64,000 nucleotides of DNA from Phaeosaccion multiseriatum (taxonomy: Eukaryota; Protista; Ochrophyta, other classes): the NCBI GenBank assembly GCA_965112735.1, contig OZ218951.1:1302001-1366000 (forward strand), read 5' to 3'. The notes below the pieces were generated by a model, which searched no databases, was not told the DNA's origin, and was given only the letters and a program-made list of their open reading frames with translations. Every line of letters begins with the position of its first letter. The stretch's first letter is position 1. Both the position numbers and the translations under genes were made by a program. Positions 35,101-59,000 of the stretch are shown piece by piece.

Positions 35101-38100
35101 GGTGGTGGTGGTTTGGGCGGTTTGGGCGGCTTGGGGAGCTTGGCAGAGCTACTTTCCATGCCGGGAGGGCTTGAACTTGCCGCCGCGGGCCTAGGGGGAG
35201 GAGGAGGTGGTCTGGGGGTAGGACTGAGAGGACTTGTGGGTGGACTCCGGGCTGGGTCAAGTGCTCAACAAGGCTTCGGACAGGGAGGGTGGGCAGGGTC
35301 TTCTGTTGATGTAGTGGTGGGAGGAGACAGGGAAGGGGGGGCGACAGCAGCGGCAACAGCAGCACTGGGAGGAGGAGGAGGAGGAGGAGGAGGAGCAGGA
35401 GGAGCAGCAGCAGGAGAAGGCGAAAGTGGGGGAGGAGAAGAAGGTGGAGGTTCCGCTGCTGGCTTGAGGCCGGGCACAGTGCTGGCAGATCTCGGAGATG
35501 GCACCGTTGTCGTGAGATGGGACGATGACATCAGAGGCGAGGGGAGGGGGGGGCAGCAGGAGGACGGAGGAGGGAAGGAGATGGAAAGGGATGAAGGGCA
35601 GGAGGAGGACGAAGTGCCAGCCAGATTCGTGCTCCTGCCAATGCCCAGGCCGGTCGCTGGCGGTGGTCGTCCAGGGAGCGGCGCTGTGGGGGGCTTTGGA
35701 GGAAGAGGAGGAGCAGGAGGAGGAGGAGCGAGGGGGGCAACAGCAGCCCTGAGCAGCAGCAGAAGTAGTAGGGGAGGAGGGGAAGGGTCAAGAGGCGAAG
35801 ACGGGAGCGGCAGTACAACTGTTACTGGCTTGGCGGCTCGGGCGCGCCGATCCCTAGCGCGGACCCTAATGTCGTTGGGGCAGTCCGACGGCGGCGGAGG
35901 AGACAGCACTGATGACGAGGGCGACGACTCCAATGCCGCGGGGCGAAGGGGGAGGTTTTCTCTCGGTGGGGGCCGTAGTGGTAGTGGTGGCAGTGGTAGC
36001 TCTGGGCTGAGGCCCAGCCCATTTGCTCGAGATGCTCTCTCCGGGGGGGCAGCAGCAGCAGCTCTCCCACCGTGGGGTGCACCCGGGGGGGCACCCGAGG
36101 GGGCAGCAGCCGGGTCGAGAGCGTACATGCTAAACAAGCTTCTGCATCAGGCGCTGTGTAATGGCAGCCCGGCAATCGTACGCCAGGCCTTGGCGGATGG
36201 AGCGGACCCGAACGGCGCTGGGATGGCAGTGGACGGTCTGCCACCGCCCTTAGTGGTGGCTGTTTCTCACGGCACGCCCGAGACTGCCCTGGAGCTTGTT
36301 CGGGTGCTGCTCAAGGCGGGTGCAGATGCGTCGTCGGCGGCGGCCGCTCTTCCTCCCCAAGCAGAGACGGGCGACGAAGTGAAGGCAGCAGCAGCAGCAG
36401 CAGCAGGAGGAGGAAGAGGAGGAGGAGTGGGCGGGCAGGCGTTACGGGCTGTGGTGCAGAAGGAAAGTGGCTATGTTGACGTTGTGAAGGAACTATTGGC
36501 TGCGGGGGCTGACCCCAATGAAGTGGACGATACTGGCGCTAGTGCTCTAGGGATGTGCACAGACGAGGAGGTGTTGCTCCTTCTTACGGAGCACATTGAG
36601 AAGGAAGACGAGGACGTAGAAGGCAGTGGACGTGCAGCTGCTGCTGTAACGGAGGAAGGAATAGCTGGAGGAGGTGCCGCTACCCCTACTACTGACAAGA
36701 AGGCGGCTGCTGCCAATGAACAAGAGGAGGGCGATGGGGAGGAGAAGGAGCAACAGCAGCAGCAGGATTTGGTGAGACAGCAGCAGCAGCAGCAGGCGCT
36801 GGAAGTGGAAAGAGAGAGCAGGAAGGTGGAACTCCCTGCTCATCGCACAGAGCTGCTGAGAGCAATCACGTGCTGCCTGGCACAGAGCTTTATTCGCAAT
36901 GTTGGCACAGAGGGCATCGCCGCCCCGCGTCAAGTGCCGGCATCCCCCGCCCCCCCGGCCTCCTCCTCCACTGGCGGAGAGGCCACTGCGGGGGGGGGCA
37001 GCAGCAGCAGCAGCGGAAGTATCGGCAGTGCCACCAGAAGTAGTGGTGGCATCAGAACTACCACCACCACCACCAGCAGCAGCACCAGCACCAGCGGGGC
37101 TGGAGGAAGCGGCGGCGGTGCCAGTGGTATGAGCAGCAGGAGCAGCCCCGCTACGAGCAGCAGCAGGCTGGCAGCCGCAGTGATGGCTGCTCGATTCCCC
37201 CCAAGCGCTTCTTCCTCTTCCCCTTCCAGCCGACAGCCGGCTGTGTCAGCTGCTCAGGCCCTGGCAGTCGGCTGGCTGGCAGTGCTCGTCAAGTTGCTGA
37301 GGTCGGTGGAACCGGAGGAGGCGCTCGCTGCGCTGTCTGATTCGGCCACTCAGGACTCGCTTCTTGTAATGTGGGAACGGGTATTGGGAGGAGGAGGAGG
37401 AGGAGGAGGTGGTGGAGGGGGGGGGGGTAGCAGCAGCCGCAGTGGTAGCTTCAGTGGCAGCTTCAGTGGCAGTTTCAGTGGCAGCTTGAGCGGTAGCTTC
37501 AAGATGCCCCCGAGGAGTGGCGAGGGGGAAGCAGTGTCAACAGGACCAGCAAGAGGGGCAGCGACGGGGAACAGGGCCAGTCCCGGGGTGGTGAGTAGAG
37601 CCCTTGCTTTGCTGGCAGAGGTGCTCCAGCGGTGCCCTTCCGAGTACGTTACACCCTTGCAGCGGAGAGGCGTTTTCAAGGGGGTGCAACAGATTGCGGC
37701 GGCGAGTGAGTCCACGACGCCCGCTCCAGCTGCCGCCGCGGCATCGGCTGCTGCTGCTTCTCCTGCTGTATCACCAACTGCTGCTGTTGTTCCTACTTCT
37801 GAGCGCACCCTCACCGCCGGTGCGTGTACATCGTCGTCAGTTATGGGAGTAGCAGCGGAGGCCCATCGCGTGGTGTCTCTGTTTGAGGCCCAGCTGCTGC
37901 TCGGGGACCATGGCGGCGGGGGAGGGGCCAGCGAGCAGTCTCGGCGACTTAGGTGTGTGGCCTCCTTGCTCGAAGAGGCAGAAGGGGACCTCAGGGCTCT
38001 AACGAAGAAGGCAAGGAAAAGGAGAAGGAAGGACGAGAAGACGGGTGGTGGCAGAGATGGAGCCATCTGTGATGGTGTGCTGCAGGTGGGCCGGGACGAG

Positions 38101-39115
38101 GCCTTGAAGGTGGAGGATAAGGTCCGACGGGCCATGAGGACTTTTCAGGAGCTGCTGGACGGTAAGCTCGGAGTCACGCCCTTCGAGGCACTCGAGTCTG
38201 GCGTCTTGCAGCCCCTGCAGCATGTGCTTATCACGCTGGAGTGGCAGCAGCAGCGGCAGCAGCAGTTGGTGATGCAGCAGCAGCAGCGCGGACTCCTTGT
38301 TAGTGTGCTGGTACCCATGCCACTGGTGATGGCTCGCTTAGAGCGGACAGTCACGAGGGCGATGTTTGGGGGAAATGAAGCAGCAGATGCCGAAGAAGAA
38401 GACGCAGTACGTGAAGGAAGCGGAGCAAGCGGCGAAGAAGAGAGCAAAGGAGGGGGCAGGGATGATGATGATGCGCGTGGTGGAAATGAAGAAGGCGACG
38501 GCGACGAGCAGGAGGAGAAACAAGGGGCGGCCACATACGACTCGCTGGTGCGCCTACTCCACGGGGTGCTCGATGCAGAGACGCTCCGTCTCAAAGCAGC
38601 GGCTGCCAACTCGGAGACGCTCACCGCCCTCGGCTTTGGGGCAGGAGGAGGAGGTGGAGCAGGCAGAGGTGGAGGTCGTGGAGGAGGAGGGGGAGACTCG
38701 GGCGCGGGTTCGAATAGCCTCAATACTGCTCTGGAGGCACTGTCTACTCCTGTCGCTCTTCAGCTTCGACCCTCTCACCAGGCATATGCGGCCCTTCGGC
38801 CCACCAAGGACATTGAAGGGGGCAGCGGCAGAACCGCAGATGGCGGTCGAAATAACAGTGTCGTCGTTGCGGTACAACCACTTGCTCGACTCAAGCAGCT
38901 CCGTGCCTTTGTGGTGCGATCGGCGCACATCTCCCACCCGGCTTACATGCACTACTGCAGGGCGCTCGTAGGTGGACTCATTGCGGTCAAGAGCTGGCCA
39001 CAGGACCCCACCGCTCCGGCCTCTTCCTACGGGCAGCAAGAGGGTGGAGGTGGGGGAGGAGGACCTCAGGGAGGAACGTGGGCTGCAGGGCCAAGTAGGC
39101 GTCATCAGCGCTTCT

Positions 39116-39150
<35 letters not shown>

Positions 39151-41076
39151 GGGAGGGGGGTGGAAGAGGACGGGCAGCAGCAGCGAGGTACGCAGAGGCA
39201 CGTTCAAACACAGCGTGGGAACCTTCTTTTGGGTCCCGGGGGCGGCTCCGGCTCGCCTCAGATGCTTGCTGTGTACCACGTGGTTGGGTTCGATCACGTT
39301 ACGGGCTCACACCTCCTGCAAGAGGCTCTGCAAGGGATGGCAGTGGATGGGAAGGCCATAGGTGGGACTCTTGGGGACAACAAGTGGGGAGGGACGGAGT
39401 TCCGTCAAGTGGTGCTTGCGGAGTGTGAGTATCGGCTCATCAGGCCGGGGAAGGGCCAAGGCTTGCCTCCGTTGCGGATGAAGACGAAGGAAGCCTACCA
39501 ACATCCTACCGGGAGCAGCAAGAGCGGCTCAGAGATGCAAGGACAAGAACAACAGGAGAAGGGGAAAGGGAAGGGCGGGGGGGTGACCGGGGATGACAAG
39601 GAGAAGAAAGAGGCCCCCCACAGCGGTACAGACGATGGACAAGGGGAGAGCGAACCAGTCTTGGAGGCTGCTTCTCGTTCCCAAGAATTAGCATCCGCAA
39701 AGGCGAGCGTGCTGTCTTGGTCTGCACCGCCATGGACTCCTTCTTTCTCTGCCGGAGATGGCCTACACGACTCCGGGTTAGCGCCGGATTCAGTTTTGGA
39801 TGGGCACGGTGGGGAGGAGGAGGAGGAGGAGGGGGAGGGGGAGGGGGAGGGGGGGGGGCGCCCTTCTGTCGGGCGATCCCAGTCATTGGGCAGCACGGAA
39901 TCACGGCAGCAACGGCGATACCGCCCCTTCTTGAACAAGGCATCCTCGGCCCGGCAACAGGTAGGGGACGCTCCCGTAGAAGAGCGATGCGCATGCTGTG
40001 GGCCTTATTTTGTTGCTTGGCTCCCTCTCATTCTCATTCTGACTGTGTCTCCTCCCGTGTGTGTATATGCGTCATTCTCTCTCTCTCTGTGTGCGTGTGC
40101 CCAGGCGAGTCGTTTGAAGGACGACGTCCTAGTTTCGTCGTCGCACGCCCGTGAGCAAGCCAACAAGGCCAGGCAACACGCTAGCAAGCTCCTCATGGGG
40201 GTTCTGCAAAACAGAGACGGAAGCAGCTCTCCCTCCACGCGGAAGACAGCTGCTAGAGGGCAGGGGCAAGGGCGAGGCCAGGCTTGGGAGGAGGAAGGCG
40301 CTGCTGCTGCTCTTGCACCGGGTGTGCTAGTTGAGGTGAAGGAGGCACAGTTGCCGTCTGCCAGCGACGGGGCGGGGACGAAGGAAGGGCAAGCCAGCAG
40401 CAGCAAAAGATCAGCTGCCACGTGGCTGGTTGGTAGGATCTCGCAGGTGCTACCAGGGGGGGTGGAGACACAAGGCGGAGGAGGAGGAGGAGGGCAGGGC
40501 GGCTTGAAGAAGAAGCCGCTCTCTCCCTTCCCATCCATCGCAGCCGTGGCCGCCGCAGCCGAAGCAGCCCAAGCAGAAGGCCAAGAGGCGACGGATACGT
40601 GTTACGTGGTGACCATGGAGGATGAAGGCAAGACAGGCCAGGTCTTGACGGTTCCTACCGAGCGGTTGAGGCTGTACACCGGCCCAAGTATGGGCAGTTT
40701 GGTGCGGGTGAAGGCGAAGGAGGGGGCGGGCGTGGCGGCGGCGTCCGCTGCTCTCGCTTCATGTCCCTCTGTCTCCGTCGGCAGTGGCAGTGGCGGTCTG
40801 TCTGCTGCTGCTCTTTCTTTCACTCCGCAGGCGGAAGGAGCGCCTGGACCCACATCTGCTTGTGCTTCTGCCGGGGCCCAACCCGCTCGGGCTTGGGCTG
40901 CCGCTTCTTCTGCTGGGGCCCAACATGCACCGGCAGACAACAGCAGTGTTGATGCCGGGGACAAGGCTAACGCCAACACAGAACAAGACGCAGCGCAGGC
41001 TGTGGGAGGAGGAGTATCAAAAGAGAAGAAGGCCAGCGATGGAGCAGAGCAGGCAGATGGTTCTGCTGTATCACCA

Positions 41077-41118
<42 letters not shown>

Positions 41119-41489
41119 TCCTCCCCACCGCCCGCTGCAGACGACAACGGCATAGCTACTCCTCTCCTCCGACGGGGGAGAATTGTGGCGGTGCACGAGA
41201 CGTCGAGTGGTAACAGTGGCTCGAGAATAATGAGCGCCGATATCGAGTTCGAGGACGGGTCACAAGAGACAGTCGCAGAGGACAGTCTTGTTGGGCTGCC
41301 TGCAGGCTTCGGCTTGGGCTCGACCTCCAGGGGGGCAATGGAGACCCTTTCGCAGTCATTGTCTTCACCGGGCGGGGCACGAGGGGGAGCAGGAGGAGGA
41401 AACGGAGGAGGAGGACGAGAGCGGACGGTGGAGACCTCATCACCTCGGCACCGCTTTAGCATGGGCTCCCCGTCGGCAGCGGCGGGTGC

Positions 41490-41521
<32 letters not shown>

Positions 41522-44500
41522 CGGCAGGATCAGCTCACTCGCGCAGTAAGCAGGGCAGCAGCCGACGGGTATGGGTGGAGCACATCGAGGAGGGGTTGGC
41601 TGGGGACGAGGAGGAGCACATGGCAGCCGATGGAAAGTGCGCCGCCGGTGCAAGCCCTCGACCGACGCTGTGGCGACCGGCCACGGTGCTGGGAGTGGAG
41701 CGGGGGGGGAGCAGCGGGCGGAGGAGGACGTTGAATGCCCAACGCCTGTACCACTTGTGTGTGATGGTGGAAGACTTTGAGTTCACGAAGGAGGAGGGGG
41801 ATGATGGCGATGGTGGTGAGGCGGACCCACCCGGCGTCGACAGCAGCAGTGGCTATCCGGTGCGCGAGGTGAGTGAGCGGACCATCATCTTTGGGAATGA
41901 GATGCGGGGTGTGCTGGACTTTCCCACTACCGGCGGTGGCCGCGGTAGCAGTAGCAGCACCGCCAGCGGTAGCAGCGGTAGATTAGGGCTTGGAGGGGGG
42001 ACTTCTGGCGCTGCTTCTGCGTCTCTGATGTCTTCGTTGTCTTCGGGGGCATCATCTTCGTCGTCGTCATCATCATCCTCCGGGGTAGTTGGTGGTTCAG
42101 CAGCTTCAGCCTCAGCCTCCTCATCGGGCGTTGCTGGTCGGCAGAGACAGAGACGGCTACAAGGGGGGGGGAGGAGGAGGAGGAGGAAGCTCTTTCTCTC
42201 TGTCCCGATCACCATCGTCCAATGTGACAGCCGCGCAGAAGCAAGCGGACGCCTCCTCTCCGCGGGCATCAACTCGTGCAAGGATCAAGAGCTCGATGAT
42301 GGGGGTGCTCTCTCGCAGAAGGAGCGGTAGCATTGGAGGAGGGTCACCAGCAAAGTCAGGGGTGTCATCCTCATCAGCAGCAGGTGCGGCAGGTGTTGAT
42401 ACAGCGGCAGCAGCAGCAACGGCGACCGCAGAGAAGAAGGCTGGGGGGGTGCGAGGGAGGGAGGAGGGTAGCGCCCGTCTCTCCCGGCGGTTGGATCTGA
42501 TTCAACCCGAGCCTCTGACGCCACACAGCTGGCTGAGGTACCGCGTCAAGAGAGGAGGTCCCCTCGGCTTCTTACCAAGCCTGCTCTCTCCCACTAGCAC
42601 CACCACCTCCAGCAGCACAGTGAGTAGTACAGCGACAACAACCACGACCACGGCAAGAGTTAGCGGTCGGAGGGAAAGCTGGAAGAAGGATGGTTTGGGA
42701 GGGGGTAAGGGCAGATTGGGTCTGCGAAAACATCTCAGGGTGGGGGGAGGAGGAGGAAGAGGAGGAGACACAGGTCTGGGGGAGTTTGAGGAAGCCGAAC
42801 GAGACAGAGAGGGGGAGGAGGAGGAGGAGGAGGAGGAGGAGGAGGAATGGGAGGAGGGAGAAGGAGGGGGAGAGGAGGACGAAAAGGAAGATGATGATGA
42901 GGACGAGGACGAGGAGGAAGAGAGCGAGGAAGAGGAAGAGGAGGAGGAGGATGAGGATGAAGGATATATAGAGGAGAAGAATGACGGGGGTGGGTACGAC
43001 GGATTTGAGCTTGTCAACGACGGACAGGAAGAGGAGGAAGAGGAGGATGCTGAGATGAACGAAGAGGACGAGGAGGAGATGGGCCTGGAGGGTGGCAAAG
43101 AGGAGGAGGAGGAGGACGAGAAGGCAGCGGGCAGTCAGGCGACTGAGACACCGCCGGACGGGAAGGAACCTCCTGCTGACACGTCACCAGCCGGAGGGGA
43201 TGCACGACCACCGCAGGGCTCGGCAAAGACGTTCCTGGACCCAGAGTTGTCGCCGTCTGCAGCAAGATCAATGCGGAGTAGACGAGGGGCCGCCAGAACA
43301 GCAGCGGCTGTTGGTGATACGACAGCAAACCAGGAGGGGCCTGTCTTGGTGGTGGATGACGAGGGCGTGATGGCGCGGGAAGGTTGGCTCCACCCTCCGA
43401 TGTTGCAGCTGAAGCTGTCGACAGCAGGTCCTGACCCTCCTCCTCCTCGGACACGTGCAGATTCCGGCGGGGGTGCCCTCGCTCATCATCATCATTATCA
43501 GCAGCAGCAGCAAGTGGAGGAGGAGAATGACGGCGGCTGGCCTGTATTGCAGGAAGACGACACGGTACTGCATTGCATAACCAGGCTCCTGGCCAGTGCG
43601 AATGCGGCTCAGCAGCGGCAGAAGGAGCAGCGGGAGGAAGCTGCTGCTGAGGCCGAGGCAGGCGACGGGGCGGGAGGGGCAGCAGGGGTGGGTGGGGGGC
43701 GGCGTAGATTTCAAGGATTTGCCACCACCCGCGCGCTGCTTTTGAATGCGAGGAGGGGCTTCTTTGGCGACACAGGAGAGCACCAAGTGCTGTACTTCCG
43801 AGTGGAATTGGACTCCTCGGAGGGGAGTGGGGCAGACCTGATGGGCTCGGTAGGGAGGGCAAGCGGTGACGGAGGCGGACACACTACTGCTGCTGAGGCG
43901 AGTCTGGTGAGAGGGAGAGGGCGAGGAGGAGGAGGGGGAGGAAGAGGAGTGGTTTCTGCAGCAATGTGGGGAAGGGTGCACTTGCCATCTGTGAATAGCC
44001 TCGTGCAGCTCTCTCCCCGACTGGCGGACTCGCTACTGCTCTCGAGGGCCGTGAAAGGGCTGCTGGGAGGAGTCAGGAGCTCTAACGAAGAAGAAGTGCC
44101 AGGAGGAGGTGGTGTCAGTGATGTGGGCGTGAGGAGGAGGGCGTGGGACGACGCCAACCCGCCCCATTGGGTCAATGGAGCCCTTTCAGACGTGTTCGGT
44201 AACGCCATTTCGGACGTGCTTGCGGTGACGGCGGACTCGTTGCCCGCTTGGGTGGACGCGCTGGCCATGTGCGGCTTTGCCTTTCTCTTGCCCTTTGAGC
44301 TTCGCCTGCGCTACTTTTACAGCACCGCCTTTGGCGTGAGTCGTAGCGTGTCCTGGTTGCAGCAGCACCAGGCCAGGCTGCAGGAGCAGCAGTTGCAACA
44401 GCAGCAGCAGGGAGGGGGCGGAGGCTCCTCGGCCTCTGCTGCGGCCGCGGGACGGAGCCCTCGTCCCCAGGGGGGTGCCGGGGGAAGGAACGCTCGAGCT

Positions 44501-45441
44501 GGCCCGGCCCCTCCTCGAAAGGAGATTGTGACGGTACGTTCGTGTGTGCGTGCGTGTGCGTGTTTCCGTGTGTACGTGTGTGTGTGTGTGAAGCTGCTCT
44601 TCCCTGTTCTCCCCCCCTCCGCCCCTCTTTCCCCCGACACCCGCCGCTCCCTTTGTGACCCCGCTTCACACCCGTTGGCACTGCCTTGGGGGGGAGGAGA
44701 AGGGTCAGGGGGGCATGGGGGAGGACCTAACTTGATTGTTGAAGCGACCCACCACCACGACGTTTCTTCCGTCTGCTGCGCCGCCATAGCTTACTCCCCC
44801 CCTTCCCCTCTCCCCTCCTGTGATATACCCCCCTTGTATATTATATTTACACATCATGTTACATGATGATCGAACCAACCAACCAACCAACCAACCAACC
44901 AACGAACGAACGAACGAACACGATTGATTGCACGAAACAGGTGTCTCGCGACCACTTGCTCGAGCACGCCGAGCAAATCATGCACGCATACCGCTCCTCC
45001 AAGGCTGTTGTGGACTTTCGGTTCCACGGGGAGAAGGGGCTGGGGGCAGGCGTCACGGCGTCCTTCTACACGGCGGTGGCTGCCGAGTTGTACCGCCGAA
45101 GCGCCAACTGTGTTTGCCCCATGTGGGTGGACGAAGACCGTACCAAGGACCCGGAGGCCTTCCTTGCGCATCCCGTAGGCCTCTTTCCCCGCCCGGTCAT
45201 GGTGGTGTTACGCGACCAGGGTAGCCTGCTTGCAGGGCTAACAGGTGACGGGAGTGGTGGTGGTGGTGGTGGTGGCGGTGGGGTGTGTGGCTCTTCCTCT
45301 TGCTCCTCTGAGGAGCCGTTGGCGGTTCTGGCGCGCTTTCGTTTCCTGGGAAGGCTGGCAGGGAGGACTCTCCTGGATGGACAGGTACGAAACGGCCGAA
45401 ACGGCACAAGCAGAGCAGAGACATGTCCATCGGGGCTTTCC

Positions 45442-45476
<35 letters not shown>

Positions 45477-46700
45477 GTGGCTTTGCTTTCGTGGACGTGG
45501 CACCAAAGGGAGAGCTCTCCTGTCGACGTTGGTGGTATGCCCGCACATGTGCCTTTCTCTGATGTGTGTGTATATGTGTGGATGTGTATGTTTGCTTTGC
45601 TTTTCCCTTTTCCTTCTCTTTATGTAACCCTCCCTCCCCTGCCCTGCGATGCACAGGTGCTCCCTCTTCCCCTCTGTTTGGACTTCTTTGCCGTCGTCCT
45701 TCGCGTGGTGCGAGAGGATTTGCAGCAAGAGGCCATGGGTTGCCATCTGGAGGAGGAGGGGGAGGAGGAAGAGGAGGGGGAGGAGGGGGAGGAAAAAGAC
45801 GAGAGCGACGCCAGAGAGGGCAGTAGCAGCGGCAGCAGCAGTTGCAGAAAGGAGGCCTCAGACATGCCTTCTTTCGCCCACACGCTAGCGAAGGAGAGCT
45901 CAAGCTGGCTTCTGACCCCTGCCGACATGCCGAGGCTTTTCCTGCAGCCAGGACAACTCATGCTGGACCTGACCACGGCCTTGACGCAAGCAGGATCAGA
46001 AGGGAGGACCGCAAGCATGCAAGGCATGCCCCTGGAGGAGTGGTTGGAGGCCGCGTGCATCTCCATGGTCGACCCGCTGTCTGGGGTGTCATTGGGAGGG
46101 GAAGAGGACCCGTCGGGGGAGGACCCAGCAACCGTGGACATGGGCAATGTGGAGAGGTATGTGAGGAAGGTGCTTTCTTGTTGGCTTGGCGACGGAGTTC
46201 GAGCGGCGGTCACCTCCTTCCTGCAAGGGTGCGGGGAGGTGTTTCCGGTGCACAAGCTTGCGGCCTTCTCCTCGGCTGAGCTCAGGGCACAGCTTTGCGG
46301 AGAGGAGGTGGAGGAGTGGGACGAGGAGGAGCTTCACACGTTGGTGATACCCGGCGCCGGTTACACGCGCAACAGCGACCCTTACCGAGCTCTCCTCGCT
46401 TACCTTGCCCGCACCACAGCGGCGCAGAAGAAGGAGTTCCTGGCCTTTGTGTTGGGCTGTCCTCACCTGCCTCCGGGCGGGCTGGGAGCACTGAGCCCGC
46501 CTCTGGAAGTGAGTCGAAAGCTCACCTCTCCGCCGAGAGGAGGGGCGGCCTTTGCCGGACAGGAGGATGTGGACAGAGACTTGCCCTTTGCGCGCACGTG
46601 TACGCACACGCTGCACCTGCCGCCTTACACATCAGACTCGCTCCTGGTGCAGAGGTTGGAATTCGCCATGGGCAACAGCCAATGCATCGACAGAGAGTAG
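32168..46700 (+). CDS. Giant HECT E3 ubiquitin ligase, TRIP12/UPL3/HECTD1-like (~4,400 aa), with 2 RanBP2-type zinc fingers, ARM-like, ankyrin and Tudor-like regions
   Basis: Zinc fingers WSCSVCTYLN...CEMC and WICKACTMQN...CYMC. ARM-like YQELAQECMTGIELLS. Ankyrin LHQA...GADPN and LLAAGADPN. Pre-HECT LPFELRLRYFYSTAFGVSR. HECT motifs GEKGLGAGVTASFY, GLFPRP, FRFLGRL, LPPGGL and catalytic LPFARTCTHTLHLPPY. Introns at ~32603-32905, 33142-33411, 39961-40104, 44534-44940 and 45385-45656. One frameshift at the G-run 42163-42171. Confidence 0.92.
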
Positions 46701-47065
46701 GGGTTTGCTATGTCTTGAGTAGTGAGAGGGGTAGTGGGACTCGGAGGGAGGAGGCGGGGAGAGAGAGAAGAGGGAGAGAGAGAGAGAGTGGAGAGGTTGC
46801 GACGTACGTACTTTCACAACTTATGTGTCGTAGCCCATATCGTCTTTGTTCAACTGGACATAGAGAAAAAGAAAATGCATGTAAACAGTGTGCACATCCC
46901 GTTCGTCTTGTCACAAGGTCGTCAAATCTCGGTCAAACTGAATCTCGTCACCTTCTCCCAACTACTAGAGCTCATCAGCTTCGTGAAACTCGGCTTGCAG
47001 TCCAAAATGTAGTGGATGGCACCTGAGGGCCTGAGCCCTTTCGCCCTCTTCTTCAATCCTCCATG

Positions 47066-50000
47066 CTAGAGGGATACATCGAATCTATCGGCATTCTTTG
47101 TCTCGCCAGGCTGATGCCCAGCAACGCTACTGCCACTCTGCCGCAGCAAAGACGCTCCTCCTCGGCGAGGGCTGCTTCTCTCTCGAACCACATGTCTCCT
47201 CGACCCCCTCCTGCCCATTTTGCAAAGATTTTGCTCTTCTTCTGCAGGGCCTCCGCCGCTGTCCAGCCCCGTTCCGTGATGACGCGGCGCAGCGAGCGCT
47301 CGGGAGGACAAGACGTGCTTTCTCAGCGGTATGCCCACCCACGCCACGTCTCCACGCTTTGAATTGGTGACACTTTCACCTCTCATGGCCATGCTCAGAT
47401 CACCAACATTTGCTCCTGCTTCAACGCGGCATCCAGGCTGCAAGTGAGCCCTTACTCCGAGCCACGCGTTCTCCCCGACTTGCACAGTCTTGAAGACGAA
47501 CCCTCCCGTGCCTTCGATGGTGTGCGCGAAGATTGTGGAGTCTTGCAACACCACCGCTGCGTCTCCAATGACGAGAAGATGCGCATCCTCAGGCCCGAGC
47601 CATAAAGATGTGTCCTTGCCAACACTTGCCCCCAGCAGCCGCAGCCACGCCGCGTACACCGGCCCGCCCGCGAAGTACTTGATGCAGAGAGCCTCTATCA
47701 AGGCCGGGCCCATGCTGCCCAAGCGGTATATATTCAGCGAAGGCGAATCGAGCGCTATCGGAGGCTGCCCCTCTCTGGCATGGAAGGATGTGCCCAGAAC
47801 TCGATGGAAAAGAATGGCTGAGCAAGCGCCTGCCAAGGCCATGAGAACTTGAAAGACGAAGCTCCCCAACACAAGAAAGAACACTCCAGTATGGCTCTCG
47901 CTCAGAGTATCCTTCGCCACCACTTCCGGAAGGACGAAGGGACAGAAGGCGGCAGCCGCATGCACATGGCCATTGCGCAGCAGCAGGTCAGATGCCCACG
48001 CGCTGATCAGCACCCCCGGACACCATACGCCGAGGAGCAGCACCACAGTCGCAAGCCCACGGAGCGCATTGTGCGCCCTCGACGGAACAGGAAGACTGGT
48101 TGCTGCATCGACGCCATCCTTCTCAGCAGCAGCACTCACTGGGTTCGGCAATACAAACGGCCGAGGTGCGCCCACTACAGAAGAGTTGCACGGTACGTCG
48201 TCGTCTCCACTCACAACGGTGCGATCTGCGACCGTGCTTCCGTCCCCAATGCAAGCTCCGCCTAGGAGAAGAGCTTCGTTCGCAACAATGCTGAAGCGGC
48301 CGATTGTGATGCTTTGCGTATCCTCGTCTCCACGGGCACCCCTTTCAGCGAAAAGGTGCACACGGCCCGCGAGCTGGGAGTTTTCCCCTATCCTGAGCTT
48401 CTCCCATATCGTAGTGATAGGAAGGGTAAGAAGTGCGCACCACTGCTCCAGGCTGGCGCCCATGGCGGAAGCAAAAGCACGGTTGAGCCCACAGTGTTCC
48501 ACAATAAGGGAGCCAACCTTGAAGAGAGGACTCTCCTGAAGAACTGCGAGTGACAGCCGTGTGGTGGCGCCGGGGCCGAGCAGCAAGAATATACGCTGTA
48601 GCGACAGCACTGCCACCATGTACAGCATGCTTCCGATCAACAGCAGCACGGGGAATGCCAATGCACGAGCGAAGATGGAGACACTCTCCCCCGCGCCGTC
48701 GTCACCACCCCCACCGGCAAGCACAAGTATCCAGAGGGGCAGCAGGTACGACCCCAAGTTGGTCACTGAAAGCAGGGCCAAGGCACAAAGCTCTTTTCCT
48801 ATCCGCCGCAGCCCCTGCTCGCGTTCGACCTCTGCCAGCGGGCCAGAGAGTGACGAATGGCCGAGCGACGCGTACGGACCGAGCTCCATCCCCTCGCCGA
48901 TGACCAAGTCCTTTGGCTCCTCATTCAGGCCCTCCTCCTCCTCCTGCTGCGTCTGCCCCCCCTCCCAGGGAGACGGACACACGTTGGACAGTATGCCCAC
49001 CTTTGCTCCCTTCCCGATCCTCACGCGATGGACATGGAGCATGCCATTCCGAGTAATGACAGACGGGCGAATGACGGCTCCGTACTCGATCACGGCCTCT
49101 TCTCCAACCTCGATCAAGTCATGCTCGTGCAGCAGCCAGCTCTCTAAGCGCGCGCTTCCACTGATTCGTGCCCCCAGCAGGCGGTTCCACACCCGCAAGG
49201 CGAAGGTACCACGGAGAACAGAAATCAGCAGTGCGGCAAGTTTCAGCACATTCTGCACAGCATACCACCGCCAGTAGTACGAGCTCCTCACGGACCATCG
49301 CCCCGGTCGCATGCGGCCAAGCACAGTCCACTTCACCACTACAATCAGGGCAAGGACCCAGCTGACTGACACGACGACGAGGAGTGGCAGCCAAGAAAGA
49401 ATCGTCGTATTGCCGCGCCCTGCTCTACGTAGCAAGTACACGCCAACGAAGCTGGGAGAAAACCCGCCGCTGAGCACAGCAACAACGAGCAGCCAACTCA
49501 GAATCTGCAGCTTCACTTGCTTGCCAGTGCTGAGTCTCCTGTGCGTTTTCATCGCTTCCCCTCCTCCACCGACTGACCCCAAATCGCGCTCCTCGTCCTC
49601 CACTCGGGCTTCGCTTGCCGCCGACGACTTCTCCCCGCTCTCTCCTCTGCCTCCGCCCTCCTCCGCCGCACCAAGCACTGAAACCAACACTGAAAGTGCC
49701 GCAGCGGTTCGGTTCTGGAAGATCTGCATTACTGTCAGAGCCTGCAGGAGTCACACAGACACAGCAGGGTCAGCAACAAGAGCGAGACACAACATGAAAG
49801 TGCGTTGTGCTCAGAGTCACTCACCTCGAAGCCGGGCACCTCTGTCCGGATACGCGAAACCGCCTGAGCCGCACTCAACGAGGTGCCTCCTCCGGCGAAC
49901 AAGTCGTCATTGGCTCGCAGGTCCGGTCGCCCAACGGCCTCTCGCATAATGCCGAGCACTTGACGGGTGGTGTCGTCCATAGGTGCGTCATCGCTGACGC

Positions 50001-53000
50001 CTAGGCTCCGCTGCCTGCCAGGACTACCATGATGTGTCGCTCGGATGACTCTGAGAACCTCTTTCACGTCTCGCTTCCCGCTACTCGTCATCGGCAGGGC
50101 ATCCACGGCCACAGCCTTGCTCGGCACCATGTATGCCGGCAGCAGCTTGCTCACTCCTTGCAGAACCATCTCAACTTTGGCACTAGAAGGTGTCAGAGCC
50201 GCCACAACCGTCTCGCGCTCTCTGTCCACGGCTGCCACAGCGCTCCTCACCCCCTCTTGATGGAGCAACGCAGCCTCCACCTCGCCCAGCTCAATGCGAT
50301 AGCCGCGCACCTTCACTTGAGAGTCTCGGCGACCCCTAAACACCAGCGATCCGTCTGCCAGCTGCCGCACCAAGTCACCCTATCAGAATGTATTAAGTTT
50401 GAGACGCATCAGATCAGAAGAGTGCACAGGGCAACAGAGAGAACTACCTCCATCCCCCCCCCCCCCGTGCGTTTTCCGCTTTTCACTGCATGACAGGCCA
50501 AAAGCAAGCCAAATATACACACAACACACGCACACACAAAAAGCCGCACACCCACCACCATTTCCACTTACCGTACGATACACTCTGCACTGGTCCGTCA
50601 AGAAGGGCGCGGGGATGAAGGCCTTGGACGTGAGCTCTGGGCGATTCAAGTACCCACGCGCCAGCTGTCTCCCCCCAATGCACAGCTCGCCCTCCACGCC
50701 CTGAGGCACCAGCTGCAGACGCTTGTCCACCACATACACTTGCACGCCGACTCGAGGCTTGCCGATGACGAACCCACTCGACTGAGCCCTAGAGGAGTAC
50801 TCATGTGCGGTCACAGCAATAGTTGCCTCGGTTGGACCGTAGCTATTTACAAGGCGCAAACGGTGTCTCCACATGTCCACTTGGCCCTGCTTGATCGGCT
50901 CCCCAATCAACGCGACGGACCGTAAGGTGGCCTCCTTAGATCCATTGGTGATGTCTTCCGGTCGAAGCAGCGACAGCAGTGACGGGGTGCAGTACATGTC
51001 TGTTACCCTCAAAGACCGTATCACCTCCGGCAGGTCGTTCAGCATGGAGCCCTTCGCTGCCAGGCACAGCGTCGCCCCACACGACAACGGCCCAAACAGC
51101 GACGCCACAGACACATCAAATGTCAAAGCAGCACTCAGGAGCACACGAGAAGATGCCGTTATGGTCAGTTCCTCTTCGTAGAGAGTCGCCATGAAGCTGG
51201 CCGTGCTTCTGTGCTCAATCATCACGCCCTTTGGCCGGCCCGTACTACCGGACGTGTGAATCACGTACGCCATGTTCTCGCCCACGGCGTGGCACACAGG
51301 CTCGGCTGTACTCTCCACTTGCATCACAGCCAACACGTCCACACAGCTCACGTCTCCGACACGCCGCGCTAAGCTGGCATCGGCGGTTGCCAGCACCTCA
51401 GACTCGCCTACTGCCTTTTCCGTCGTCAGAACGACGCTCAGCCCGGCGTCTTGTGCGATCATCGACAGCCTTTCGTCAGGATGCTCGGGATCCAGGGGCA
51501 CGTACGCCGCCCCGGCCTTGAGCACGCCCAGCACTGTCACAACCGCCTCCACGCAGTCCCCAGCAATCAGCACCCCCACCAGGCACTCCGGCCCCACGCC
51601 CCTCCCCTGCAGCATGCATGCCACCGCATTCGCATGCCCATTCAACTCCCCGTAGCTCATCACCCGACCCGTCTCATACTCGTGCAGGGCTTCCTGCTCC
51701 GGACTGCGTGAGGCCATCTCTACGAAAGCCGCGTGCAGAAGGGGGGGTGGTGGTGATGCTTCCTCTGCACCTCCCTCCTCATCTCCATTGGCATCCCCCG
51801 CCACCAGTGCAGCGCCGCTCAACGTCTCCACCACCTTCACACGGTCCTCGTGTGCCAAGATACTCAGCTTCCACACGCTCTCGCCCGGCCTGCCCACTGC
51901 ACTCTCCAGCAGCGCCAGGAAGCTCCGCCCCAGGGTTTCCACTGTAGCCTGGTCGAACACCGCCGTATTGTAGCACAGGCTGCCGTGCATGTCCGACGCA
52001 CTGTCCGTGCTGCGCACAAGGTATAGCTCGATATCAGTCGCATTCTTCCAAGTATCCACACCCCCCTCCTGCAGAACAAAGAAGGCCTGCAGCGCGGTGC
52101 CACGATCATCTCTGCCCAGCTGGGCCCGCTCCACCACCTTGTGGAACGGTGCCTCGGCATGCTTCATGGCACCCAGATACGCGACCTGTACGCGAAGCAG
52201 CACCTCCCGAAAGCTGGGGCTTCCTCCCAGGCCCAGACGGAACGCGAGGGTGTTGACGAAGCATCCCAGCACTCCTTCCAGGCCTTGCGCCACGTCTCTT
52301 CCGAAGTGCGCAGTGCCCACCATCACATCCTCTGTGGCACATACACGAGCCAGCAGCACTTGGAACGCGCCCATGAGCCCCACGAACAGTGTAGCGGAGC
52401 TGCCCGCGCACAGCTTACTTAACTTGGCCACCACTGCACTGGGTAGCACCAAGTCCACCTTTCCGCTTCCTCTCTCTTGGATGCCTTCATTCACCATTGC
52501 TCCACTAAGGCCTCGTTGGTCATGCGTCCGATCGAGGGGCAGCTGCAGGGGAGTGGTACCAGCTAGCTGACCCTCCCAGTATTCAAGCAGCTCCTCGATA
52601 CTGCCTTCGTCGTCCAAGCGAACGCGTTGCCACCTGGAGTAGTCCGCGAAGCTGAAAGGCAGAGCCGGTAGGTCTTGTGCAAAGCCTTGCCCGGCCATGA
52701 CAGCCGCGCACACCGCCTTGAACTCGGCGTTGAAGAGCAAGTAGCTTGCACCATCAAAGATGCCATGATGGAACGTAGATACTGCGGTATAGTGCTCCTC
52801 CTCTCCGCTCTGCTTCGGGACGTGCACGACCAGCGTGCGCCACAGCGGCTGTCTCTGCTCCAAATCGAATGGACGAGCAATATCGGCCTCGATCAGGCTC
52901 CGAGCCGCATTAACGCTGCTGACTACGGCTGAAGAGAGACCAGCTGACACCACTTGAGCCGCCGTAATTCCAAGCTGAACCTGCCTCAGAGAGCCCTGCT

Positions 53001-56000
53001 TTGTCCACTCAAGCGCCGTCCGGAGCACGTCATGTCGCTCCACTATACTGCCTAACACTTGTGCTATCATGTCCACAATTTCAGCGGATGCTCGTCCGGA
53101 GATCAGCGAGACTGGCAGCGGCAGCACCACTGGGAGATTGTACACGCTCCCCCCCCCAGGGACAGTCGTCCGCAGTGCTACGTCTGAAAAATACATGTGC
53201 TCCTGCTGGTAAGCCGCGGGGGCGTCGGTATCCGAAGAGGACTGCAAGAGGGCCATGGAGCTGCCATTTGCCCCGGCCCCCGTTGTTTGATCGTCTTGCT
53301 CATTCAGCGGCCCCGAGTCGGCTCCCAGCACTTCCTCTTCGACCCATGCAGCCAGCGCCGTTACCGTTGGATACAAGAAGAGCACGTCGCTGGTCACATT
53401 CACCCCAAATCGAGACTGCAGCCGAGTACGCAGCTCCACTGTTGACAAAGAGTCAAGACCTGCTTCCATCAGAGGAGTGTTCGCGTCCAGCGCCTCCGCA
53501 CCTTTCCCTATGAGCTCCCTGGATACATCAAGCACCGCCAATCGCACTGCTTGTTGTCGCTCGCCAGGAGATAGTCTCGAGAGCTCCTCGCGCACTTCTT
53601 TGCTGAGCGCAATGCTGCTTGACGAGCCTGCTGCATCTGCTGCCACAAGATCTGCCAGTATCGGCACGCAACGGGATGCCCCCAAGCTGCCTGCAAACTT
53701 GCCCCAGTCCATGCCAGGCAGGACAGCCACATCACCCACGGACGCTGACGACATCGCAGCGGCATCTAAGGCAGCCATGCCCAGCTCAGCTGACACCGTG
53801 CCCACACCCGCAAGCTCCAACTGCTTTTGAACGATATCGAGCTGGGCGGCCATACCCACGTCTGCCCACGGCCCCCACTGCAATGACGTCCCTGCGAGCC
53901 CGAGGTGTCGCCTGTGCCGCATCAGCCCATCCACAGCCGTGTTCGCCGCAGCGTAGTTGGCCTGTCCAGCGTTACCCAGTACTCCGGCCATGGATGTGAA
54001 GCAAAAGAAGAAGTCAAGGCCAGGAGCGCGCCCCTCCTCCTTCGCCCAAGCCAACGAAAGCTCGTGCAAGTTCATCGCCCCCTGCACCTTCGGTCGGAAG
54101 ACGTTTGTCACACTCTCCGCCGTTTGCTCTCCCAACAGCTTATCATCCAGCACCCCGGCAGCATGCACCACGCCGCGCACAGGGGGCAGCAGAGGCAGCA
54201 CGCCCCCCAGGCAAGTCCAAAGTGCCTCAGCATCAGCAACATCACAAGTAGGAGTATGGATCAGCTCCACCTTGTTCCGAAGCTGCTGCCACTGTTCTGT
54301 CATGCTCTCGGCGACCTTCCCACTCCTCGACAGCAGCACCAGGTGACGAGCGCCCCTCGACGCGAGGTGCTGGGCCGTTACGAGGCCGAGAGCCCCCAGA
54401 CCGCCGCTGATGACGTACGTGCCATCGGACACCACTGGCACACCGTACGAGGGGTTGGTCAGCACCACCTTGCCGATGTGCTTCGCTTGGCTCATGTATA
54501 CCATGGCCTTTTGAGTATCCTCCCTCATGTCAAAGGGTATGGTCGGTAGGGGCTTCACATTGCCAGACATACAATCGTCAGCAAGACGCTGCAGCCCGCC
54601 ACTGATCCAGCCCGGCTCATGAGCTAGGAAGTCAGACTCAACCCTGCTATGCAGTGCCAGCAGCTCGTACCTCACATCGGGCCGGGCGGTGCGCAACTGC
54701 TCGTGACTCCACACGCCTCGCTTGCCGATGTCAACAAATGTACCACCCTCACTCAGCATGTCCAGCGAGAAGGGAATGTAGTCTTCGCTCAGAGAGTTGA
54801 GCACCACATCGACCTTCACCTCACCCATGGACTGCTTGAACGCCTCTGCGTCTCGCGATGACACAATGTGCTCCACTCCCAAGCTCCGGAGGAAGTCATG
54901 CTTCACAGCAGCACCGGCAGTAGCGTACACCTCTGCGCCGACCCGCTGAGCATACTGTACGGCAGCAAGGCCCACACCGCCCGACGCGGCGTGAATCAGA
55001 ACCTTCTCTCCAGCCTCGAGGCCCTCAAGAGCCTTCATCACGGTGAGGAACACGGTGGGAAGTGCAGCGGCCTGCTCGAAGCTCAGCACGGCCGGCATCA
55101 CGGCCAGACACACATCACTCGTCTTCATATGACTGCGCAAACATCCTCTGTCCGCAAAGCCAAACACTGCGTCGCCGACACTGAAGGAAGACTTTCCTTC
55201 CACACTGATCACTTCGCCGGCGAAGTCGGAGCAGGGATCTCCAGGGTCGCCACCAGGATACATGTCGAGCACATTCAGCACGTCCCGGAAGTTAAGGCCA
55301 ACAGCCCTCACTACCACCTCCACATAGCTGCCAGTCGGGGCCAGAGGCCGATGTTTGCCAACATCAACATCATCGCAGAGGAGAAAGGCGTTGGTTATAC
55401 TACCTCTTGCCTTAAGCTCCAGGGAAAACGGAAGAGTCAAAGCTGGGTGTGCAAGCTGAGGCGTCCAGCACTGCTCATCGTGTACCCACACATCTTCTGT
55501 GGTGCCAGAGAAGGCCAAGCCTAAGGCAAGCTCGCTGTCTGAGGGCTCCTTATCGCTCAGGTCCACCACGCCAATCTGCATGGAGGGGTGCTCCATCCTC
55601 GCAGTCCGCACCAGCCCAGTAACCCAGCTGTGACGCCAGTCCTCGCCACTTTGAACGCCTCTCGTCAAGACAGTCAGCGGTACACTCGACGTAGTGGACA
55701 AGCTCCTGAGTAGAGTCATCAGGGCGTAGGCCGCTCGTGCTTGCTGGCCCCCTTCTGCGTCTTCTTCGCCAGCTCCGGGTATCAGCACGTACAAGACTCG
55801 AGTCCACTCGCCCTCTCCAAGAAGACGAGTACCATCATCCCACGAGGCGTCCATCCCCCCATACTGAGTGTGCACGTGCACGTGCACGTTCTCCGGAACA
55901 CAACGCCGCACTGCAGCAATGATTGCAGTCTCTCCTTCCCTCTCGTCCTGTGGAATAACCACCAGCCACTTCTGTGGCGCCGCCGCCTCAGTAGGGTCAG

Positions 56001-59000
56001 TATCACTACCAGGGGCCTCCTCCTGTGCAGACGGTTCAGCAACATGCCACTCCAATGCGTACATTGCACGACGAACGGGGCTGACGCGCACAAAGCCCCT
56101 CGCCCGCTGCACACGGAAGCCCCGCATCTCCACGAGCACCTCTTTGCTGTCGAAGTCTGCAATCACCACATCGAACTTTGCGCTGTCCGCCACTGACTGG
56201 ACCTCACTCAGCACCGTGTGCACCCACACGTTCTTTCCCGTCATGGAGGCGGAAACGACCACCTCGTCAAAGCCAGCAGGTAGGAATGGAGAGCCCCTCC
56301 TTTCCTTGAGCAGTTTCCTTGGCAGCGCTTGCATGATGGTGTGGGTAGCATTCTCCAGCACCGCGGGGTGCAGAGCAAAGCCCTTCATCTCCCACGGCTC
56401 GCACAGCTCCTCATCCATGGCACAAACGACCGACAGAGCCTCTCCGTCCCCTCCGTACATGTGGCGGGTCCGCTGAAAGCGGGGGCCGTACTGGAAACCG
56501 GCGTCTACGAATGACTTGTAGACCTCACTCGATACGTCATGCTCGCCAACTCTAGCTCGAATGGATTCCACGTGCAGCGAAGCACGCGCCGCGCTACGCT
56601 CCAAGACAGACACGTGCTTCATTCTTGCCATGGTGCCCTTGTCGCCCGTAGCACCTCCGAAGAACTGCCATCTGCCGCGTGAAGGGCACTCATCCCTGCA
56701 CAGACCATTGTATGGCGGTTTTGCGTCTTGTCCGTGCCGGCCTGTTGGAAACCCTCAATCTCCAGTGGAACCACAAAGCTGGCTCCTTGCAGGACTACTT
56801 GCTGTTCCACCCCGAGCTGTCTTCCTCCTAGAGCAGCGACGACGCCCACTTCAATGTACGTCACCTCCGGGATGATCACCACATTATTGACGGCATGGTC
56901 CTTGAGAAGGTCCTTGAGGTGAGGGGAGAAGGGGCTGGGGAGCCGCATTCCGTCTCCCTCCTGGACCACCTCGCCACTCGGCATAAAGGCCAGCGGAGGC
57001 TTGTACCAAGGAAATGATCGGCGAGTCGGACAAAGCTCAAGATGCTCCGGCCCCGCTATACTGCCCAGGGCTGCTCCAAACGAATCCTCAGAGCTCTTCC
57101 CGCGCGTGAGGGAGGAGATCCACGCCAGCCCCTCGCGACGCTCGCACTTGGCTCCCATGTTGCTCAGCACAGGGTTAGGGCCCACCTCAACGACGCTCAG
57201 GCCAGCCCCCCTCCCGTCTCCCATCCAGTGCTCCACCACCGTATGGATGCCTTCCGCGAACAGCACTGGCGACAGCATGTGTTGCACCCAATACTTCGCC
57301 TGCGTCACCTCCTCCTCTCTCACCACCTCACCTGTCACGTTGGACACCAGCGGAATGCGTGGGGCACTGAATGACACCTGCCTCAGAACCTCCTCCAGCG
57401 CACGTACAGCGGGCTCCATCAGAGGAGAGTGGAAGGCGTGCGACACCTCCAGGGCCTTGCAGCCCACCCCATCTGCCGTGAGCTTCTCCACCACCTTATC
57501 CACAGCGCTGCGAGCTCCAGAGATCACGCTCGCCCTCGGTCCATTCGACGACGCCAACACCACCTCGCCTGCCCCCCCCGCGGCGTCGATGCTTGCCAAA
57601 GTCGCCTCCTTGCCTGCCCTCACTGCGAACATCACTCCTTTGCCCTCGGGGCAGGCCTGCATGGCGGCTCCTCTCTTGGCGGACAGCATCAGCCCGTCCT
57701 CCAGCGACATGACGCCGGCCACGCACGCCGCCACCACCTCGCCCAGGCTGTGGCCCATCACCATGGACGGCTCCACGCCCTCCGACTTCCACAGCTCACA
57801 CAGGGCGTACTCCAGCACAAACAGGCACGGCTGGCAGTAGCGTGTCTCCTTCAGCAGCGCTTGTGCAGTCTCCTCCTCCTCCTCCTCCTCCTCCCCGTCC
57901 TCAGCGGCGGCAGGGTACATGAGCTCCACCACAGACTTGTCCAGCCAAGCCCGCTCCATGAGCAGCGTACTGCACCGCTGCACGCACTCGCGGAACACGC
58001 CCTCCTTCTCGTACAGCTCTCTGCCCATGCCCACGTACTGCGAGCCCTGTCCAGTGAACAAGAACGCCACCGGTGAAATGAAAACCTTCTTGCTTTGCTG
58101 CCCATCCAGCTGCAGCAAGACCTCACCCCTCTCAACCAACGTTGGTCCGAAGCTACTGAGCACCGCGTGGGCGTTGGTGCCTCCAAATCCGAAGGAGCTC
58201 ACCCCGACCACCACAGATCCATCGGAGTTGGTGGGTAAAGGGGTCATGGAAGATGGGAACAGGACTGCACTTCCCTCCATGTCGAGCTCTGGATTTTGCT
58301 CAATGAAGTGAAGATTGGGTGGAGCCGTCTTGTGCTGCGCCACCAGGACGGCTTTGATGAGTCCGGCAATCCCTGCCGCTCCCTCCAAGTGCCCGATGTT
58401 TGTCTTGAGCGCCCCTACAATCAAAGGCTTCCCTTCATCGCGGTCGTGGGCGAACACTCCTCTGAGAGCGCTCATCTCGATGGGGTCGCCGAGCGACGTG
58501 CCCGTGCCGTGTGCCTCCACGAAGCCAACGTCGTTTGGAGATAGCCCAGCATCAATCAAGGCGTCTGTGATGAGCTGCTTTTGAGCACCAGGGTTTGGAG
58601 CCGTCATCCGCGCGGTGGGCCCATTATGGTTCACAGCCGAGCCTCGCAGGACAGCCAGCACCTCATCGTCGTTGGTAAGGGCGTCGTCTAGGCGCTTCAA
58701 CACGATTGCTCCGCACCCCTCGCCTCTGACGTAGCCGTTGGCGGACTTGTCAAACGTTTTGCAGTGCCTTGAGAGCGAGGACAGAAGGGGGAAACAGGGA
58801 AGATTTAGCAAGAAGACAGGAGGAGAAGGGCGATTCAAGGTTCTCACTCTGCCTTATTGAACAAAGCAGTGGTGCGTGACCAGGTGCCTACCGACTACCT
58901 TATCGGGCCTTCACCTGCAGAGCATCATACTCATTAACTTCCTCCCCTCCCTCCCTCCCTCCCTCCCTCTTCTCTTTCCTTCCTCCCTGCTCCCCCCCCC

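Follow-up and report, generated by a model that had tools for sequence, protein, structure and literature searches.

How does a multi-modular assembly line set its product free when its last domain belongs to the Pls/PosA type? The question is raised by a hybrid polyketide synthase-nonribosomal peptide synthetase (PKS-NRPS) gene on the minus strand of a 64,000-nucleotide stretch (the window) of contig OZ218951.1 from Phaeosaccion multiseriatum (GCA_965112735.1, positions 1,302,001 to 1,366,000). Chain release shapes the products of such enzymes, and its known repertoire comprises thioesterase (TE), reductase (R)/Dieckmann (DKC) and condensation (C)-type domains. A sequence-only reading of the locus had placed a Pls-type terminal domain downstream of a canonical C domain and had proposed that this domain transfers the finished chain to an external amine or hydroxyl acceptor. 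The placement agrees with the analysis presented here, and release by transfer is the reading that we favor, with some reserve.

The assembly line ends in a divergent Pls/PosA membrane domain

The last exon (47066-49741, -) belongs to one intron-split eukaryotic (ochrophyte-like algal) megasynthase gene, whose domain order, read from the open reading frame (ORF) listing and Pfam scans of the exon pieces, is FAAL-ACP-KS-ACP-KS-AT-DH-ER-KR-ACP-C-A-PCP-terminal domain. The segment KS-AT-(DH-ER-KR)-ACP is followed by C-A-PCP in the order of a hybrid PKS-NRPS and with intact core motifs, and it contains one in-frame TAG in the second KS (KS2). Two GT-AG introns, both in phase 0 (50571-50380 and 49824-49742), join C-A-PCP to the terminal domain in the same gene. 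All searches were run with single exons as queries and not with a spliced protein.

The terminal ~730 residues are a divergent Pls/PosA (TIGR02353) membrane domain directly behind the PCP. The NCBIfam TIGR02353 "Pls/PosA family NRPS" terminal-domain profile matched in three stretches (E=2e-39, 135.5 bits), and Pfam gave a Hexapep match alone on the last exon. The domain begins ~75 residues past the PCP and extends to the stop codon, which is the family's C-terminal position behind the carrier. The range originally assigned to it, 47330-49510 (-), corresponds to last-exon residues 78-804, from the first transmembrane (TM) helix to the end of repeat 3.

Hydropathy delineated six TM-like helices in three pairs (residues 80-104/111-144, 318-342/350-391 and 559-588/616-650), and the same segments formed helices in an AlphaFold2 (AF2) model computed from an alignment of the last exon with 39 relatives (pLDDT 80.4, pTM 0.87). 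The model contains six long helices in three pairs and three beta-helix blocks, and the low pLDDT in repeat 1 is confined to the insert of that repeat. The pseudo-trimeric left-handed beta-helix (LbH) and the TM topology that the sequence-only reading had suggested looking for were both recovered in the prediction, as three repeats on a helix bundle. The model superimposed on predicted structures of the Pls/PosA family (ESM Atlas clusters) with TM-scores of 0.77-0.81 over ~680 residues. In VIA-align comparisons, repeat 3 matched maltose/galactoside O-acetyltransferase subunits (Z ~13, rmsd 2.8-3.0 Å, ~145 residues), and repeat 2 (model residues 344-493) matched type-B chloramphenicol acetyltransferases and sugar N-acetyltransferases (Z ~11). 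In the predicted structure, each of the three LbH repeats resembles a hexapeptide acyltransferase subunit, and the repeats are packed as one pseudo-threefold domain on the helical bundle. A PDB sequence search and Foldseek against the PDB returned single LbH acetyltransferases only and no solved Pls-type domain. The AlphaFold/RoseTTAFold model of PosA was described as six bent helices and three five-turn left-handed beta-helices with approximate threefold symmetry (PMC10522769), and our model and fold searches agree with this published picture.

The upstream module would supply a neutral N-acylated amino acid

The C domain is intact, with its FHHGIFDG motif at 52750-52770 as seen in the alignment with the Chrysoparadoxa relative described below; the sequence-only reading had located HHGIFDG upstream of the terminal domain correctly. 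LgrA, TycA and GrsA align with the entire A domain, which contains the A10 Lys and D235. Its specificity code, taken from the motif alignment and not from a trained predictor, reads D-V-A-S-A-I-S-I-A-K. In the same alignment, classic A-T-terminal relatives read DAETIGTVV, with a Glu at position 239 that would be expected for Lys/Orn-type substrates. The pocket here is without this acidic residue, and therefore polycation synthesis is unlikely.

It had been argued from the sequence that N-acylation by the C domain prevents polymerization through the alpha-amine. This argument does not carry over from Pls, in which the donor is held on the T domain, the acceptor is free, the growing chain is never enzyme-bound and the side-chain amine of the free acceptor attacks (PMC9205021). 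Because N-acylation alone would leave polymerization of a diamino acid possible and a neutral amino acid would prevent it, the neutral A-domain pocket is the stronger argument against polymerization. Canonical release domains (TE, R/DKC, terminal C/CT) were not found by Pfam in any of the exon pieces of the gene, and no TE was found by Pfam in the 24 long ORFs and exon pieces of the window, which was not scanned exhaustively.

The fusion recurs in a few protists

An exhaustive protein search with the last exon, in a library without the window's own protein, gave 1122 relatives at E<=1e-3, all at most 34% identical. A word-index search with the same query gave distant bacterial Pls/PosA proteins only, and its length range hides megasynthases. 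Domain layouts were determined with domain profiles and Pfam for the best 150 of the 1122 relatives. Among these, a Chrysoparadoxa australica protein (P0013, CAM9397790.1) reads ER-KR-ACP-C-A-PCP-terminal, is cut by a contig end and is collinear with the gene studied here over 1474 residues at 38% identity. The layout C-A-PCP-terminal is found in a Phalansterium solitarium transcript (P0014) and a metagenome protein (P0091), and P0136 has a partial C domain. A Stygiella incarcerata PKS (P0078) reads KS-AT-KR-ACP-KS-DH-ER-KR-ACP-terminal, with no A domain or amino-acid module. Two further layouts are amine-oxidase-PCP-terminal in a 2149-residue JGI metagenome protein (P0035) and amine-oxidase-A-PCP-terminal in a ~2313-residue Eucalyptus protein (P0149). 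A word search with the Chrysoparadoxa terminal region gave no additional relatives that contain a C domain.

Some of these proteins have features of their own. In P0035, the same divergent terminal domain is fused to three carrier domains and a pair of flavin amine-oxidase domains, without an adenylation domain, so that this protein represents another donor type. In the P0149 cluster (Eucalyptus grandis, E. globulus), which is uncharacterized, the Pls-type terminal domain carries a catalase-like insert. The ESM Atlas contains an uncharacterized Streptophyta cluster named "Catalase/hexapeptide".

In a quick maximum-likelihood tree, the last exon grouped with P0013 and P0035 (SH-aLRT 97) and then with P0014 (94), separate from 30 classic A-T-terminal proteins of bacteria and fungi, which formed a clade of their own with 99% support. 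The fused relatives carry very different donors, including plain acyl chains, which supports an off-loading role of the terminal domain in the divergent clade. A literature search gave classic Pls/PosA only and no description of this architecture, plus two near mentions: an "NRPS_term_dom of unknown function" in Symbiodiniaceae, and a separate A-PCP-Pls/PosA gene in a bacterial hybrid cluster. We conclude that the Pls/PosA-type domain as a PKS-NRPS terminator recurs in a few protists and is uncharacterized.

The repeat-3 histidine is conserved in the divergent clade

Residues were scored by percent conservation per column in the 40-sequence alignment of the last exon and 39 relatives, in which family proteins annotated Pls/PosA stood in place of Streptomyces albulus Pls and Acinetobacter baumannii PosA. 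Repeat 3 is the best preserved and retains R701, G704, G708, H740, S783, G788-E789 and W801-G803-P805. H740 (47522-47524) lies in AHTIEG (residues 739-744), where the family motif is lqtHlfED, and the galactoside-acetyltransferase profile match begins at this residue. The His is present here, in 97% of the 39 aligned relatives and in all six members of the divergent clade. The His/Glu pair that the sequence-only reading saw in AHTIEG is present, but the nearest relatives share only the His: the Glu occurs in 69% of classic members and is absent from the closest ones, in which the residues that follow the His are A-S (P0013), D-N (P0014) and Q-Y (P0078).

The RxLG motifs noted earlier in repeats 1 and 3 were found as RLLGA at residues 187 and 701, and repeat 2 is diverged as stated, with SAMGA at 425. 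Repeat 1 contains an acidic low-complexity insert of ~20 residues, and the family's W.GSPA cap is degenerate there. In repeat 2, two Gly residues of 92% conservation are replaced by Glu (E432) and Ala (A487); the fold of this repeat is still predicted.

Proposed release by transfer to a free nucleophile

Reasoning from the analogous Pls and LbH acyltransferases, LpxA and LpxD among them, we think it somewhat probable that the terminal domain releases an N-acyl-amino acid from the PCP onto a free nucleophile at the membrane, in a single turnover and without forming a polymer. The FAAL would load a fatty acid, which the two KS units would extend, the second with full reduction, and the C domain would N-acylate a neutral PCP-bound amino acid with the reduced fatty/polyketide chain. 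In the terminal domain, with H740 as the putative general base, a free nucleophile located at or in the membrane would then take over the N-acyl-aminoacyl group of the PCP thioester; this nucleophile would most likely be an amine and possibly a hydroxyl or water. Such a reaction would be the Pls reaction, with its carrier-bound donor and freely diffusing acceptor, run with a lipidated donor. Because the gene contains no TE, R or terminal C domain, the His is kept and the layout recurs in relatives, transfer to an external acceptor, as the sequence-only reading proposed, is the best-supported interpretation, although unproven. The accompanying claim of an unusual off-loading chemistry needs correction: every Pls condensation is already a transfer from a carrier to a free acceptor, and "repurposing" would therefore be a small mechanistic step and not new chemistry.

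Several findings weigh against release by transfer in this gene. The assembly-line-fused members of the family are all uncharacterized in activity, product and acceptor. The tree placement involves long branches and a quick tree search only, the TIGR02353 score of 135.5 bits is far under the curated cutoff of 423.1, and 73 of the 156 columns with at least 60% conservation are retained. In the residue alignment, the repeat-3 His is kept and other positions are changed. The repeat-3 E.D motif (95% each) reads D719/H721, with an Asp-to-His change at 721; the 97%-conserved Arg of repeat 2 is a Ser (S425 in SAMGA); and a 92%-conserved Trp segment of repeat 2 is deleted. P0013, P0014 and P0078 keep the repeat-2 Arg, the Trp segment and the repeat-3 E.D, and these losses are specific to this copy. 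KS2 contains an in-frame TAG (59276-59278, -) on the 5' side of its DTACSSS active site. Between the terminal exon and near-identical read copies, 12 synonymous and 28 non-synonymous differences were listed, which is near neutral in a small sample that mixes copies. Four sequencing runs match the locus, all as DNA contigs without splice joints, and no RNA run matches; the introns are therefore placed by sequence and homology. This copy may be decaying or no longer functional.

The last point amounts to a reading in which the gene is a decaying paralogue (pseudogene) of a multi-copy family, its fold kept and its function lost, which would concern the copy and not the family. We regard this as a possibility that deserves attention, although we doubt it. 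The TAG, a codon that also serves as this gene's own stop, stands in a region that is collinear with homologues, and R425S, G432E, D721H and the lost Trp segment fall where the nearest relatives are conserved. Read contigs over the gene body (47150-50700) include versions that are 3-4% divergent, and summed read depth there is several-fold above that of the 3' flank (46900-47150), which indicates several near-identical paralogues; among the read variants in the terminal exon are a 1-nt length variant in a G-run at 48956 and a 3-nt variant at 48944. Decay is harder to reconcile with a last exon of 891 codons and a DH-to-A exon of 2082 codons that both stay open, although at 60% GC chance would place a stop roughly every 31 codons, or with the intact core motifs of C, A and PCP, the intact terminal His and the GT-AG borders and phase that two introns retain. 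The lone TAG could be an assembly error or belong to one allele, and the variant sample behind the near-neutral ratio is small and mixes copies.

Continued polymerization by the terminal domain, either as a homo-oligomer of the A-domain amino acid or by addition of the lipidated unit to a free oligomer to give a lipid-capped oligo-amino acid, is very improbable. All characterized family members are iterative polymerases (PMC10522769, PMC9205021), and the TM bundle and three repeats are kept here. However, the missing acidic pocket residue means that no second amine is expected on the substrate, the alpha-amine is blocked by the upstream C domain, one acidic motif residue of repeat 3 is lost, the domain falls outside the classic polymerase clade, and the Stygiella relative is without any amino-acid module. 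We also consider it unlikely that the domain is only a membrane anchor or export conduit, with release being spontaneous, hydrolytic or due to an enzyme encoded elsewhere. Eukaryotic biosynthetic genes need not cluster, the genes next to the synthase in the window are housekeeping genes (for a HECT ligase, a cation-efflux protein and an RNA polymerase III subunit), and repeat 2 is degenerate, all of which would suit an anchor. By contrast, a mere anchor would not need the His and adjacent repeat-3 motifs that are conserved across very distant fused relatives, and the domain always stands directly behind a carrier domain.

Gene layout and window neighbors

Features of the 3' part of the gene are collected in Table 1. 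The 5' part leaves the window at 64000, inside the FAAL, which was recognized in Pfam scans as an AMP-binding domain with a DIP2-like C subdomain. The loading end (59279-62505, -) reads FAAL-ACP-KS-ACP, without an AT after the first KS, and a full KS-AT-DH-ER-KR-ACP module comes next; the first KS may be served in trans or be non-elongating.

Table 1. Features of the C-A-PCP module and terminal domain (window coordinates; AF2, AlphaFold2 model)
Feature	Position	Strand	Basis
Condensation (C) domain	51844..53076	-	Pfam PF00668 E=2.5e-47; HHGIFDG at 52750-52770
Adenylation N-terminal subdomain, motifs A1-A7	50572..51720	-	Pfam PF00501 E=2e-74; aligns with LgrA A domains in the PDB, E=1e-100
Intron, 192 nt, gtaagt...gatag, phase 0, between RVYRT and A8 motif GDLVR	50380..50571	-	Sequence; A-domain alignment ends at RVYRT, A8 resumes at 50379
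Exon: A-domain C-terminal subdomain and first half of PCP	49825..50379	-	Pfam AMP-binding_C, PP-binding
A10 Lys	50074-50076	-	In exon 49825..50379
Ser of PCP GGTSL	49879-49881	-	In exon 49825..50379
Intron, 83 nt, gtgagt...tgcag, phase 0, within PCP between EVPGFE and ALTVMQIF	49742..49824	-	Sequence
Last exon, 887-891 codons	49741-47069; stop TAG 47066-47068	-	Translation
Start of last exon: second half of PCP and acidic/Gly-rich linker	49511..49741	-	Translation
TM helix pair 1, residues 78-138 of last exon	49328..49510	-	Hydropathy; AF2 helices, pLDDT ~90
Repeat 1: helical segment and left-handed beta-helix	48797..49327	-	Alignment; AF2 strands
TM helix pair 2, residues 316-386	48584..48796	-	Hydropathy, AF2
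Repeat 2, most diverged	48074..48583	-	Alignment, structure match
TM helix pair 3, residues 557-650	47792..48073	-	Hydropathy, AF2
Repeat 3, best conserved	47318..47791	-	Alignment, structure match
Basic low-complexity C-terminal tail and TAG stop	47066..47317	-	Translation; AF2 pLDDT <50

Three apparent irregularities in the coding sequence were considered as introns or frameshifts. An intron covering the KS2 TAG was rejected, as the Stygiella KS aligns collinearly through it and the spacing of the Pfam profile leaves no room; the TAG would be a nonsense codon, an allele or an assembly error. The frame changes within the DH domain at about 56700-56617 (-). A frameshift was set aside there in favor of an 89-nt GT..AG intron (56617-56705, -), with a weak donor gtctgt and the acceptor gaag, which is the more likely explanation judging from the sequence, in that it restores the spacing of the CurF and Rif DH structures. 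A hidden intron in the low-complexity insert of repeat 1 (48930-48985) was rejected, the sole GT..AG pair there spanning ~30 nt. Within the 192-nt intron, a run of 13 G (50451-50463, -) is accompanied by a cluster of loose read ends at 50466-50479, a sign that the assembly or the polymerase may have had difficulty with this homopolymer.

The neighbors of the synthase gene are a HECT/ankyrin ligase gene, a cation-efflux protein gene and an RNA polymerase III subunit gene. The convergent neighbor (32168-46700, +) has 2958 codons without a stop and encodes ankyrin repeats, followed by pieces of which the last encodes a HECT ubiquitin-ligase domain, and it has a RanBP-type zinc finger upstream. 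This neighbor is probably one giant E3 ligase gene that is unrelated to the synthase.

Implications and comparison with known systems

We raise the tentative possibility that the Pls-type membrane domain of the divergent, mostly eukaryotic clade constitutes, after TE/R and C-type domains, a third general class of catalysts for assembly-line release. A lipid or lipo-amino acid would be off-loaded and, in the same event, conjugated with an amine or hydroxyl close to the membrane, such as that of a polyamine, an amino acid or a lipid head group, perhaps with export through the domain's own helical bundle, and the products would be undescribed algal amino-lipids. If this is true, multi-modular lines would have a new kind of release logic, in which the terminator is membrane-embedded and built of hexapeptide repeats. 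The polylysine-synthetase family, so far isolated, would then be connected with the biosynthesis of lipids and lipopeptides in algae, amoebae, jakobids and possibly plants. As versions with a single turnover and a defined donor, the fused enzymes would offer an enzymological handle on the Pls mechanism, and a practical use would be the conjugation of assembly-line products to chosen amines.

The closest characterized systems are Pls of S. albulus, which makes epsilon-poly-L-lysine, and PosA of A. baumannii, which makes delta-poly-L-ornithine. As in the gene described here, their terminal domain follows a carrier, combines six paired TM helices with three LbH repeats of pseudo-threefold symmetry and carries the repeat-3 His; the shared logic of a carrier-bound donor and a free acceptor would apply to this gene by analogy. 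In contrast, Pls and PosA are single-module A-T-terminal enzymes with a Lys/Orn-type pocket and no C domain, whereas this gene has FAAL-PKS and C upstream and a neutral pocket. Identity to them is at most ~30% with a profile score below cutoff, and repeat 2 has degenerated and one acidic motif residue has been lost here. P0013, P0014 and P0078, all uncharacterized, likewise end an assembly line in the same divergent type of terminal domain, but their terminal domains are just 21-23% identical to this one in the 40-sequence alignment, and the Stygiella protein has no NRPS module.

Soluble LbH acyltransferases, such as maltose/galactoside O-acetyltransferase, serine acetyltransferase and sugar N-acetyltransferases, are comparable in that one repeat here is approximately one of their whole subunits and that the His stands at the start of the loop interrupting the beta-helix. 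They differ in being homotrimers with three active sites and a coenzyme A or ACP donor in trans, whereas the domain described here has three unequal repeats in one chain on a TM bundle, a conserved His in repeat 3 only and a fused donor carrier. LpxA and LpxD are acyl-ACP-dependent LbH enzymes, and this fold can pass an acyl group from a carrier thioester to a hydroxyl or an amine. In that it closes the line after the last carrier, the terminal domain resembles TE, R/DKC and CT domains and the amine-selecting domain of insect Ebony, which have unrelated folds (alpha/beta-hydrolase, SDR, CAT-like and GNAT-like, respectively) and are not membrane-embedded. CT domains and Ebony also release their products by transfer to a free amine.

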